A stretch of 64,000 nt of DNA from Oikopleura dioica (Eukaryota; Animalia; Chordata), in the NCBI GenBank assembly GCA_907165135.1, contig OU015568.1, positions 11,036,001 to 11,100,000 of the forward strand. Direction: 5' to 3'. The position numbers and the translations under genes were made by a program. A model generated the notes under the pieces. It had not been told where the DNA came from. It was given only the letters and a program-made list of their open reading frames with translations, and did no database searches. Positions 49,891-55,100 of this stretch are shown piece by piece. Numbering within the stretch: the stretch's first letter is position 1; every line of letters starts with the position of its first letter.

Positions 49891-51409
49891 ATGTCGTCGG
49901 AGCGAGACGGCGAAAAAGAAAGAAGAAGGATCAACCAGCTGGTTACGGACGCCAATCGTTGCGGTTGGCGCGGCGGAAACCGCCGTTCTTCCTCACCTGG
50001 GCGTCGCAATTCATAGCTCTTTTTGCAAATTGAGTAAGCTTATCAGAACAACGGGCCGCGAAAAAAGGTCACGTGTGAATTTTCTAGCCATGTTCCGGCA
50101 ACTTGTATTTCCGGTTGAACCAGAGCCAAATTTATCTGTATCATTTGAATGAAATGATATCATTGATATGATCCCTTGAATTTCGATCTGCATTTAAAAA
50201 AATGGCGAGTCATCATCACTTATCGCATTTTTTCCCAATATTTTGCTCTGAAATGCCTCTTTCGCTAACAAATTTTATCAGTGAAAAATTCTCGTGATGT
50301 TGAACTATCAGAATGATGAGCTTGTGATTTTACCGGATATCCAGGTGCTCCCACAGTCCGTTATCGAGGCTGTCGGTGAGAGTCCGACGTCCCGCGTGGC
50401 CCGACTTGTGAGTGCTTCTTTGCTGATAAGCAATTAATGATCCGGCTAATCAGCTGATTGTAGTAAAACTTGTCGCACAATTATTCTTTTGAGAGTATGA
50501 TGATTTTCTTCGTTAATCCCTTTTTTCTTCTTCCCACAGACATCTTCTCCTTCTCGTCATCATTTGTCTCTTGATAAGAAACTGCTGGTAAAGATCATTT
50601 AAAAACTATAAAACATATTTATTTTTCCTCATTTAAATATTTTTTGAGGGTTTTCCTTGCCATGTGATAAAAATAAAAAATCTGATCAATCTGATTAAGT
50701 TTTCAATTTCTGCACCCTGAAAAGGGCAGTTTACTCGAAACGCAACAAACCATAATTACAGGAATTCAAACCTTTGTTTGATCTCTCTGAACTCTATTCT
50801 GTAAGTTAACTCACTATTCCCTTATCATATTTTGATAATTAACAGATATTCCTATTTTTGAAGCCTTTGATAAGGCACTCTTTATCCAAACTAGTCTGGT
50901 CAATATTTCTAGAGGCACAGATAGACACAGCGAACCATAAGATCAACAGAATGACATACTTGTCACAATAATGAAAAAGTCAGAGAAGTTACATTCTTGC
51001 TAATTTAAATAAACTCGTACCAATTGAGTGCTTCACAATTTCTGACTCCTTCGACAGAAGGCGATTTTACTAAAACGGTTTCATAAGAGCCCATAGAAAA
51101 AGATTATTTTCCTAAAACCATAAGATCTGTCTTTCGGCATTCTTTCAGGTATTTTCGCAGGGAGGGGCGAAGTGAATGTAAATTTTGACACAATGATTAT
51201 TTTTACCGCCTTCGTTGAAAAAGGCATTCTAGATCCGAATCACAAGAATCAAAAAGTTAGATTTTCAGATGGATGAGCACGGGTAGCATTAATCCAAAGT
51301 AACTAGACAATATGTTTCCTACGTAGCTTATGAATTTTTCAACTCCCTACTGCGGAGTACACCATTCTCCAGAACGACAATCACCATAAACATGTTCTCG
51401 GACATCTAG
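49891..51409 (+). CDS. Candidate small multi-exon gene (about 80 aa), unverified
   Basis: Open, phase-compatible exons with AG/GT boundaries: 49891-49941 (MSSERDGEKERRRINQL), 50312-50407, 50540-50587, possibly 51269-51282 and 51373-51409. No recognisable domain. Confidence 0.28.
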
Positions 51410-51575
51410 AACCAAAATTTTTCTTCACCCAATTTAATCAGCCAAGTGACTTATCCATGTCTGGTACGAGTGCGCAGCCCCCACGCTAGGTTAGCTGTGT
51501 GTCTGCCGGTCCTGTCCTCTCTCACAAGATCTCCTTCACCAGGCGTCGGTTGATCACTTGAAAGCGAGCTCCCCC

Positions 51576-52140
51576 GAGTCCGATTTTCGATTGTCTAACT
51601 AACAGAATGGAGAGGATACGGGCCGGTTGGCAGACACTCGGTATCAAGTTTTGTACTTGGGGCCCATGCGGCCCCTCCAATACCCAATTTTACCCAAACC
51701 AATCGGTTTCTAGTGATTCTTAGACATAATCGGGCAGACCTTCTGTGTTTCATTGACTGTAAAGGTGGCAAATTTTTCCTGCACAAATGTACGGCAGGTT
51801 TGGTTAAGGGGATCCGTCACGATTTGGAAGTTTGTTTCGACTGGGCCGAGAAGCGCGCGCGGAGCTCTTTGAAGCACGGAGCCCCAAAAATCCGATCACA
51901 AATCAAAACGAGCTCCAAATTGACGCACCAAGAAGAAATAATATTTTTTAAAGATGGAAGGGATCGGCGCGTGCTTGCAGACCCGCTAAATCTCCTCCCG
52001 ATGAGATATTACCGATGACAAGTTTTGAGCAAAGGACCCTCTGCGTCGAGGGCTAGAAAAATTTGTTATCCTATAGATGAATGTTATTCTATTATGTAAA
52101 GCGTTATATGATGGCGATAACTCTTGTATTCAATAAAAAA
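51576..52140 (+). pseudogene. Spliced-leader relic followed by ATG and decayed intronless coding-like sequence (probable retrocopy)
   Basis: GAGTCCGATTTTCGATTGTCTAACTAACAG (51576-51605) matches the 3' 25 nt of the O. dioica SL exon as I recall it, with +T and a TAAC duplication; ATG at 51607; AATAAA near 52131. Confidence 0.55.
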
Positions 52141-55100
52141 TATGAGTGCGGAGGTTTTAATAGAAGCTTTATGGTATTTCGGAGTAAACAGTCCCGGGAA
52201 AGAGTCCCAGGATAGCAGAAATTGACTCGATCTCTATATCGAGTCTTAAAAACTCAATGGGTACGACAAAACAGCCAATTCGGTGATTTAGCAGTCGATA
52301 GACCCCTTAGTTCAACATTTCTTCTTTATGGCCTCCGTCAATAGCAGCTCTAGAATCGTCGGAAATGGCTCTTTCAACCGATGCTAAACCAAATCTATCC
52401 ATTTATTCTTTCCCCTTCCTTCCAGAGCCAAAAGTTGACGCCAGGAATATTCACATATCAAAGCGAGAATTCAACACCAAAATACCAAAAATACTAAATC
52501 CGACCACAGGCTGCCCAGGATTCGAGCTCATCAAAACCGCAAACTTGCATTCGACAAGTCAATGAGTAAATTCCGATGATACGCTCGGCGAAATTCGACC
52601 TTTTTTTCTTAGATCATGAGAAAGAAGTGGGCATTCTAGTGTTTTGCTTTTGAGAAAAGTAGCACCTCTTCTTCTGACAGCGACGAATTGGTGATTTTTT
52701 CGACGTCATTTCGATTTTACGGAAAAAATGGCGTTATTTCAAGTTCGTATTTCACTCCTCCTTAGCGTGGAAAGGAAAAAGCTCGATTTTCCGTGACAAC
52801 TCATTTGGAATGCAATTTTTAATAAATCTGGTACGTAATCGTACGTCTGGTAGTAAATCAGCATTAATTTTCAGACAAAAGAATCTTATTTTTTCCAATT
52901 AGAATATTTTTTTTAATTTTTAGGAGCTTCAAGAACCTGTTTTATGCTTTCAAAAATTATCGTTTTTTAAGAATTTAGCAAGGCGTGAATTTGATTGGAC
53001 TTATAAGTTGACAGATTTGCTAGTCTCTTGACTTGATTTTAATGAGAGCAGGTGAGAGAGTTATGATTTTTCCGGCTCGTAATCAAGCCAGAGGTACCGA
53101 AAGGAACGACGGGAAGGAATTAGAAGCAACGGCGGGTAGCGCATCTAATAAAAATGGGCCCCTTATCGTAAAAAGCAAGGCGGAATCGAAAGTCTGACAC
53201 GTTTATGACTTGTATTAACGTCTTTTGACAGCTACTCGTAAGTCGTGGATTCTACTCCGCAATCAAGAACATGGCATTTTTGCTGAAAAGATCCTGAGCC
53301 TTCATATTTAGCCGTAGAACTTTTAGAATCGTATTTTCTTTGGACTTATAAAGAGCCTTTTTCTCACCGCTGATCCGGGTATAGTTAGCCGGATTGGCAG
53401 TTGGTTCTTTATCCATTTTGTATTTATATCAAAAATCTCACGAATTAAGGATCTAAAGGGATGCCGAGCATTGGAAAAACGGGTCCGTCGGGTACCTCAA
53501 GCGAGACAAAAGTCGAAGTTGTATAAACAAAACACCAAAAACAAAAATCCAGAGCAGCGATCACCAAATCCTTGCATCACTCCTTTTTTTACAGGCACTG
53601 ATAAGAAAAATATCAACCCTAACGGATTTTTGGGAGATAAGTGTTTACTCCCGTTACTGGTATTTTTTCTACGAAAAATTTTTCATTCGCTTTAAAAAAT
53701 ATGGGGGCTTTTATTGTTTTTTCCGATTTTTAAGAGTTGCCTTATCATTAGCAAAGTTTGAACTGTTATTGGCTTGAAGTCCCTGATTTTCTTCGGCAAA
53801 GCCGTTTTTGATCTGCGTACAGTGAAGTGCGTTTAGATGGGATTCATTTTTGTAAAGAAAGAGTTTATGTTCACTTTATCCGATTTTATTCGTCGTGAAG
53901 CTTTTATTCGATTTTATTTAAACGCAACCATCCGGGCAAAAGACCCAAGAGCCACAGTTAACTGAGCGGGCTACGTCCTTAGTGTTCTTATATTACAAGC
54001 GATGGATTTTTAGGAAGTTGGTTTTTGGCTGCTTGATTATTTGAAATGAACAAGTGTTGATATGAAAAAGGGTTCTCGTTAATCGGAAATGGCTTTCAGA
54101 TGTCCCCACTCGAGTTGGCGGCCATTCTGCGTGTGCGATTATTTCAGAAATTTATTTTAACTTCTAGAACTCGACCACAAGGCACCACCACCATGCGCCA
54201 CCTGGGTCAATAAGGGTCGGGCGCGCAAAATCGAACGCTTTGAATCACATTGGGCAATATCTTTTATTCTCAAAATTAAACGATATTATCGTCGATATAT
54301 AAATATGAAATACATTTGTTCAAGATCTAGGCGAGTGAGCAACTTAATTTGTGTGATATTGTGTTTCCTGAATAAAGTTCTATTTGAGTTTATTCCAAGT
54401 AGAAGAGTGGAAATAGTAACTTGAGCCTTTTACAGGAAGATTTGGATTTTGATCAGATAATTATCAAGCTTCAGATTCCGTCGTGTTTTTTCTGAGAGAA
54501 GATTTTCCACTTGGGCTCAGAAGCGCGTGAAAATCTGTGTGAAAAGGCAAAGGGAGGCCGACGGAAAAAGCGATTAATCTTTTCCAAAAAGATGCTCACG
54601 ATCAAACGAGTGCGCCGAGCACAGGAGGCCAAGTACCACCGAGAAAATTCAAGTGGGCCAAGATTCAATCTTATTCTTTCTTTCGTGACTCGTTTTTACT
54701 TTTCAAATGTGAGGAACGGATTTTCCGGAATGTAATATATATTAAATCGTAGTCTGTGATAATTCGTCGGCCAAAATATATCGGTTGAAAAAACGTAGTA
54801 TTGTTTTGGTAAACAATGCGATTTGCGAGATGGCCCTGGGCGTGTGGCTCACAGCTGGCAGCTACTGCATTCGCTGCGTCGTTCTCGTGGCATTCAACAA
54901 CCGTCACTCTTCAATAATTCAAAATTGGACAGTTCTTCTTTTGAAAGTATTCCTTTTGAAAGAAGGGATTGCCCAGTTAAATTCAGAGTGAACGCAACTC
55001 AACTGTAATGACACATTACATTGTTCCGGAATAAGCAACTGGGGCAATTAACTGTTGCTCAAAAGATAGGGCCCAAAATGGGGCCTATTGTTGGGCACAA

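Follow-up and report, generated by a model that had tools for sequence, protein, structure and literature searches.

The 64,000-nt stretch of Oikopleura dioica chromosome 1 analyzed here (the window; C1:11036001-11100000) contains a short piece, at 51576-51605, that is a genuine derivative of the spliced leader (SL) and lies outside any SL RNA gene. The best reading of the locus is an isolated SL relic, not a processed mRNA retrocopy of ~500 nt. We tentatively propose, at a probability of roughly 0.45, that a non-coding locus which already existed took up a young and short SL fragment, probably templated by RNA. The genome searched was the Okinawa O. dioica assembly OKI2018_I69 (64.28 Mb, 19 contigs; PMC8008620), and the features of the locus are collected in Table 1.

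Table 1. Features at and around the SL piece (window positions).
Feature	Position	Strand	Remark
SL-derived piece	51576-51605	+	SL exon positions 16-40; terminal AG at 51604-51605
Junction A plus ATG ORF, 38 codons	51606-51723	+	ORF 51607-51723 including the stop; not SL intron
Open frame, 139 codons, no start codon	51599-52015	+	judged non-coding
G+C-rich island	51450-52050		G+C 0.42-0.59 against 0.29-0.41 in the flanks
AATAAA hexamer	52132-52137	+	followed by a run of 6 A only
12-mer, candidate target-site duplication	51561-51572	+	recurs at 51905-51916, 11/12 bases
Conserved block, 190 nt	51803-51991		candidate conserved non-coding element or exon; single-copy here

The published O. dioica SL is 40 nt long (PMC6883708) and has the same sequence as the exon in the genome searched. 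An earlier reading of the window, made from the letters alone (hereafter the sequence-only reading), had quoted this leader in a version identical to the published one. It had also described an SL stretch followed by A-ATG, and had advised an alignment to the SL RNA. This alignment matched SL positions 16-40 to the piece with no substitution, a T-run lengthened by one extra T (51584-51587) and a TAAC duplicated in tandem (51596-51603), which is the match described. Directly 3' of the piece, an A (51606) and an ATG (51607) open the sequence AATGGAG..., which is unlike the SL intron. A model of the exon, built on sequence only and run over the whole genome, gave the piece 21.6 bits (genome-wide E 0.0096), whereas the noise ceiling was 15.6 bits. 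The ranking was headed by 49 perfect exons, followed by about 10 variant or truncated SL genes, a rearranged SL gene (L037, 31 bits), the window piece and a short copy on chromosome 3 (L034), and all matches ranked below this copy reached at most 15.6 bits. None of 100 shuffles of the window yielded an SL match, and the local alignment of 51300-52300 with nine SL genes and their flanks returned 24 nt as the sole match. In the own genome, the flanks on both sides of the piece matched only themselves. The lack of substitutions indicates that the piece is young, unless it is constrained, and we infer that it is evolutionarily young; under selection, it could be old. Furthermore, no substitution combined with two small insertions fits slippage-prone copying better than long neutral decay.

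SL RNA genes differ clearly from the window piece. The SL 3' 25-mer was found in 53 exact copies and 3 near-copies by genome search, and the 14-mer core occurred 57 times, with 3/57 occurrences outside SL genes. In the SL genes sampled, the exon was preceded by a promoter block of ~95 nt (30/30; motif ...cgaaaatagg...tcgaaatcaagcacc...) and followed by the GTAAGAATCG donor and a pyrimidine-rich intron. 5S rRNA genes flanked the SL genes L003, L006 and L029 as inverted pairs at a distance of a few hundred bases. SL RNA genes have been described as 5S-linked inverted repeats, as far as the description is cited in a later paper (Ganot et al. 2004, via PMC8008620); the 5S linkage is usual, not universal. 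Of the 25 nt that end the exon in these genes, the window piece contains 24, in the same order. However, no GTAAGAATCG donor (or any GT donor) or intron was found 3' of 51605, the promoter block and SL positions 1-15 were both missing 5' of 51576, and the 64-kb window contained no 5S gene. The sequence-only reading was therefore right that this is not an SL RNA gene, since there is no GT donor at the piece, and real SL genes carry 5S genes.

Lower-scoring or truncated matches of the SL model were also inspected. All kept the promoter, and all kept the intron except L048, where it is deleted after the exon. Truncated or variant SL genes are represented by L047-L050, in which the promoter block is likewise present. 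Among these, L047 (C1:10290089-10290124, minus strand) has an intact promoter and intron and a 2-nt insertion near the exon 3' end (TCTAGAACAG), indicating that exon-end variants of the leader exist. The rearranged SL gene L037 (C1:16148123-16148149) carries SL positions 14-40 with one change and ends in TAATAG; the reverse complement of the SL intron adjoins it, as would result from an in-place inversion of the exon. The copy on chromosome 3 (L034; C3:1583591-1583609; 20.4 bits, E 0.024) reproduces SL positions 21-39 exactly (19 nt). It is flanked by an 8-bp inverted repeat (GAAGCTGG / CCAGCTTC) and may lie in an open frame. A degenerate SL gene at the window locus was also considered, and rejected, as the likeness seen by eye to the 3' end of the SL intron or to its reverse complement was at noise level.

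Three SL pieces were found outside SL genes in 64 Mb, namely the window piece, L034 and L040. The last was obtained by the scan that the sequence-only reading had suggested, which sought SL 3' ends without a following GT throughout the genome. Judged by its sequence, L040 is a textbook SL-tagged processed pseudogene (L040/L041; approximately C4:14061054-14063680). After the full 40-nt SL at C4:14061054-14061093 (L041:1499-1538) come GG-ATG and a signal-peptide-like ORF. Over 1.4 kb, the body shares 92% identity with an intact gene, L042 (C1:10486891-10488338); the alignment begins at the acceptor AG of this parent, whose 37-nt GT-AG intron is precisely missing from the copy. The copy is frameshifted and hence a pseudogene. 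The next 1.2 kb of the body (L041:2936-4123) matches a second intact ORF at C1:9491000-9492230 (L043), ~1 Mb from L042 on the same strand, with a 10-nt overlap at the switch point in the copy (CCAGAAAGAC). This switch possibly reflects a template-switch chimeric cDNA of paralogues or a parent gene that was split by a later rearrangement. An A13 tract is located ~160 nt beyond the end of the similarity. Altogether, L040 indicates that retroposition of trans-spliced mRNA does occur in this genome. The window piece and L040 have in common the same SL and a junction in which SL...CAG leads through a few bases to ATG; SL promoter, intron and 5S gene are absent from both. In contrast to the window piece, L040 has all 40 SL nucleotides, a body of ~2.6 kb that is 91-92% identical to intact genes, a removed intron and the A13 tract. 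In the surroundings of L040, Ty3/gypsy-type RNase H and integrase ORFs were observed ~7-9 kb upstream on the same strand (L051:40-2174; C4:14052040-14054174), and a RING-finger ORF is located between them and L040.

Next to the window piece, no comparable body was recognizable. The sequence-only reading had described ~500 nt of coding-like sequence downstream of the junction, and this description did not hold. Pfam returned nothing for the 38-codon ATG ORF or the 139-codon frame, and the latter obtained a low recognition score from a protein language model. Codon-usage log-odds, trained on the long ORFs of this genome, showed no frame preference at the locus, whereas a control coding ORF showed one. 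The frame is also broken in a close relative (P0017, see below). We judged the region downstream of the SL piece to be non-coding. As the sequence-only reading had reported, an AATAAA is present near 52131, but no poly(A) tract was found 3' of it. The parent search that it had proposed returned self-matches only, whether the query against the own genome was the 721-nt locus, the translated frame or the first 205 nt 3' of the junction; for L040, a parent had turned up immediately. Likewise, the search for a target-site duplication gave one repeat (51561-51572 and 51905-51916), which is at chance level, with ~1.6 such pairs expected per 1.2 kb by our estimate. The second copy of this repeat falls within the conserved block. 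The G+C-rich island opens ~130 nt upstream of the SL piece and encloses it.

Other candidates at the locus were tried and rejected. A CBM14 or peritrophin-A-like domain was suggested by the Cys pattern of the frame, but the Pfam model was silent on this frame, and the domain is unsupported. A HMMER search returned CBM14-repeat proteins with E down to 3e-18, although single repeats gave 8-12 bits each; whole-sequence phmmer E-values to 1e-18 arose purely from adding weak matches over 8-18 tandem CBM14 repeats. The phmmer list also included a Sel1-repeat protein. In a six-frame scan of the genome with PF01607, 51 other CBM14 sites were detected, none of them at the locus. For a hidden non-coding RNA, Rfam gave nothing credible at E up to 10, and folds of 51560-51700 had z between 0.03 and -1.4. 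A repeat or retroelement at the SL locus was rejected, as the 10-kb neighborhood is unique, save for a small repeat near 55.75 kb. Since the locus is single-copy, the suggestion of the sequence-only reading that a retroelement carries the SL piece does not hold. This neighborhood contained no tandem repeats and no Pfam-recognizable ORFs, and no ORF of at least 110 aa was found from 55.5 kb to the window end. The segment from ~46 to 58 kb is without recognizable genes, and the locus sits in a gene-poor part of chromosome 1. Elsewhere in the window, a U6 snRNA gene was observed at 29015-29121 on the plus strand (Rfam RF00026, 110 bits).

Relatives of the locus were found by word-based protein searches, which returned metagenome-derived ORFs that are translations of related DNA. 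Eight of these ORFs (P0001-P0008; ENA, JGI and Logan) form two clusters and match the window at the conserved block only, with ~82% identity when translated in one frame. Their flanks are unlike the window, yet they are alike between the two clusters, and the clusters are closer to each other than to the window. In a published lineage tree, the Okinawa lineage split ~25 Mya from the Osaka and Barcelona lineages, which split from each other ~7 Mya (PMC11067885). Judged from these alignments, the cluster pattern fits this tree, and we infer that the metagenomic relatives represent other O. dioica lineages. The block showed no significant RNA fold on either strand (z 0.03 to -1.4) and no Rfam match. 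A further relative, P0017 (ENA), is a minus-strand ORF that runs from 51877 down to 51598 with ~90-96% identity to the window. P0017 can be aligned to the window only with two frame changes across 51700-51745, indicating that a close relative has frameshifting indels and that an ORF is conserved on neither strand. P0017 terminates in HSVS-stop, which corresponds to the TAAC duplication and the junction read in antisense; so, the close relative has both of them as well. Two further searches for relatives, a metagenome scan and a search whose query was the antisense ORF spanning the SL piece, gave no match.

Because the conserved block is single-copy here and common to distant lineages, it is probably old and native, as far as these comparisons of sequence go. 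The unconstrained DNA around it has diverged beyond recognition between lineages. A young SL piece and an old, native block could not have arrived jointly as one 500-nt retrocopy.

In the preferred reading of a short captured fragment, the source would be the 5' end of a trans-spliced mRNA or a free SL exon. During error-prone repair of a chromosome break, a short SL-bearing RNA or cDNA would have been used as the template, and polymerase slippage in the course of copying could account for both the additional T and the duplicated TAAC. The insert would measure between 30 nt and ~215 nt, the upper limit being set by the start of the conserved block, which would have pre-existed together with the sequence beyond it. 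If a variant of the source leader existed, it would end in TAACTAACAG and contain the extra T. The stop exactly at the exon end points to a spliced or cleaved SL-bearing RNA as the template rather than to an SL gene. As far as the work is cited in later papers, classical non-homologous end joining (NHEJ) is missing in O. dioica, which depends on microhomology-mediated end joining (MMEJ) instead (Deng et al. 2018, via PMC11067885; also PMC6635534).

Four other explanations were weighed against this reading. The sequence-only reading had proposed a classical processed retrocopy, in which a trans-spliced mRNA was reverse transcribed, truncated 5' within the SL and inserted, so that 51606 to ~52140 would be its decayed body. 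The part of this proposal that stood is that the piece is derived from the SL, that it ends at the exon 3' end, and that the mechanism is real, as proven in the same genome at C4:14061054. The junction exactly at the exon end, with the ATG one base on, also has the look of the 5' end of a real trans-spliced mRNA, and the AATAAA at 52132 agrees with an mRNA. However, the parent is missing at both the DNA and the protein level in the own genome, as are the poly(A) and a credible target-site duplication, and the coding signal is absent by Pfam, language-model score and codon usage. Moreover, a body decayed past recognition is incompatible with a substitution-free SL piece, the block that is single-copy here is conserved in distant relatives, and the G+C-rich island opens already upstream of the piece. 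We consider such a retrocopy distinctly unlikely. What the retrocopy leaves unexplained would be accommodated if a cDNA of the locus's own trans-spliced transcript (acceptor 51605/51606) had recombined back, with part of the SL replacing the end of the outron, which is the stretch upstream of a trans-splice acceptor. The lack of a parent elsewhere, of poly(A) and of a target-site duplication would then be expected, the native block downstream would be a downstream exon, and the ATG would directly follow the junction. In addition, the SL 3' end (CTAAC...AG) would itself serve as branch point and acceptor, the block starts just past an AG resembling a 3' splice site, and GT-AG pairs exist that join the ATG frame to the block frame. 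Nevertheless, 16 GT-AG combinations fit by chance, so that the spliced two-exon ORF model, whose exons were searched one by one, has no discriminating power; a single donor agrees with the block boundary, and P0017 carries a 1-nt indel there. A codon-usage signal is also absent. In-situ recycling of this kind appears unlikely. Its stronger form, a live trans-spliced gene partly overwritten by the cDNA of its own mRNA, with the relic CTAAC...AG as the current acceptor and the block as a downstream exon, we rate as somewhat less probable still.

An origin at the DNA level, as a fragment or decayed copy of an SL RNA gene, draws on the abundance of these genes (53 exact and 3 near 25-mers), which are rearranged in places (L037, L047-L050). 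Against this stands the lack of the promoter block, exon nucleotides 1-15, the intron and a 5S gene at the locus, whereas all SL-gene variants inspected keep the promoter block or intron remnants. A random piece of DNA would also end at the exon boundary in only ~1/100 of cases by our estimate, and this origin is improbable. The likeness could finally be due to chance, or to an ordinary branch-point and acceptor region that resembles the SL 3' end. Indeed, the SL 3' end is similar to a generic 3' splice site, and 13-base SL ends followed by a non-G occur at the background rate (2 found versus 2 in the reversed control). The window piece, however, matches over a run of 24 bases with one gap of 1 nt, and it has a genome-wide E of ~0.01 at 6 bits over noise and no counterpart in the shuffled windows (0/100), leaving chance very improbable. 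Therefore, we retain the short captured SL fragment as the preferred explanation.

A genomic SL relic is a built-in tag of the passage of DNA through mature RNA, and this tag has been well exploited in dinoflagellates. The tag also exists in O. dioica, where it is rare: the 64 Mb yielded a single clear processed pseudogene with an SL tag, as well as two orphan pieces, both short. This rarity indicates that mRNA retroposition is a minor force in the compact O. dioica genome. In our literature search, no report of SL relics or SL-tagged retrocopies in tunicates was found. The orphan piece of the window may report RNA-templated break repair in an animal without classical NHEJ. If, alternatively, the live overwritten gene were true, it would represent dinoflagellate-style mRNA recycling in situ in a chordate.

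Two known systems offer a comparison with the captured fragment. MMEJ is known for templated filler insertions in other organisms. As in the filler insertions of MMEJ and polymerase theta, the window piece would be a short insert from a foreign template with slippage duplications and without poly(A) or target-site duplication. In contrast to these insertions, it would have been templated in trans, probably by RNA. In dinoflagellates, retrogenes carry relic SLs at their 5' ends as a result known as 'mRNA recycling' (PMC6050394, PMC5585692, PMC12014239). The dinoflagellate relics are abundant, often stacked, and located on recognizable coding retrogenes in families. Unlike this, the 64 Mb of O. 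dioica contain only three SL pieces that are not part of SL genes, and the window piece is without a recognizable body or parent; SL relics are too rare here for the dinoflagellate-style recycling signature that the sequence-only reading had seen in the locus. Similar to the dinoflagellate relics, however, the window piece is an SL exon in genomic DNA that is truncated at its 5' end and whose exon 3' end abuts sequence other than the SL intron.
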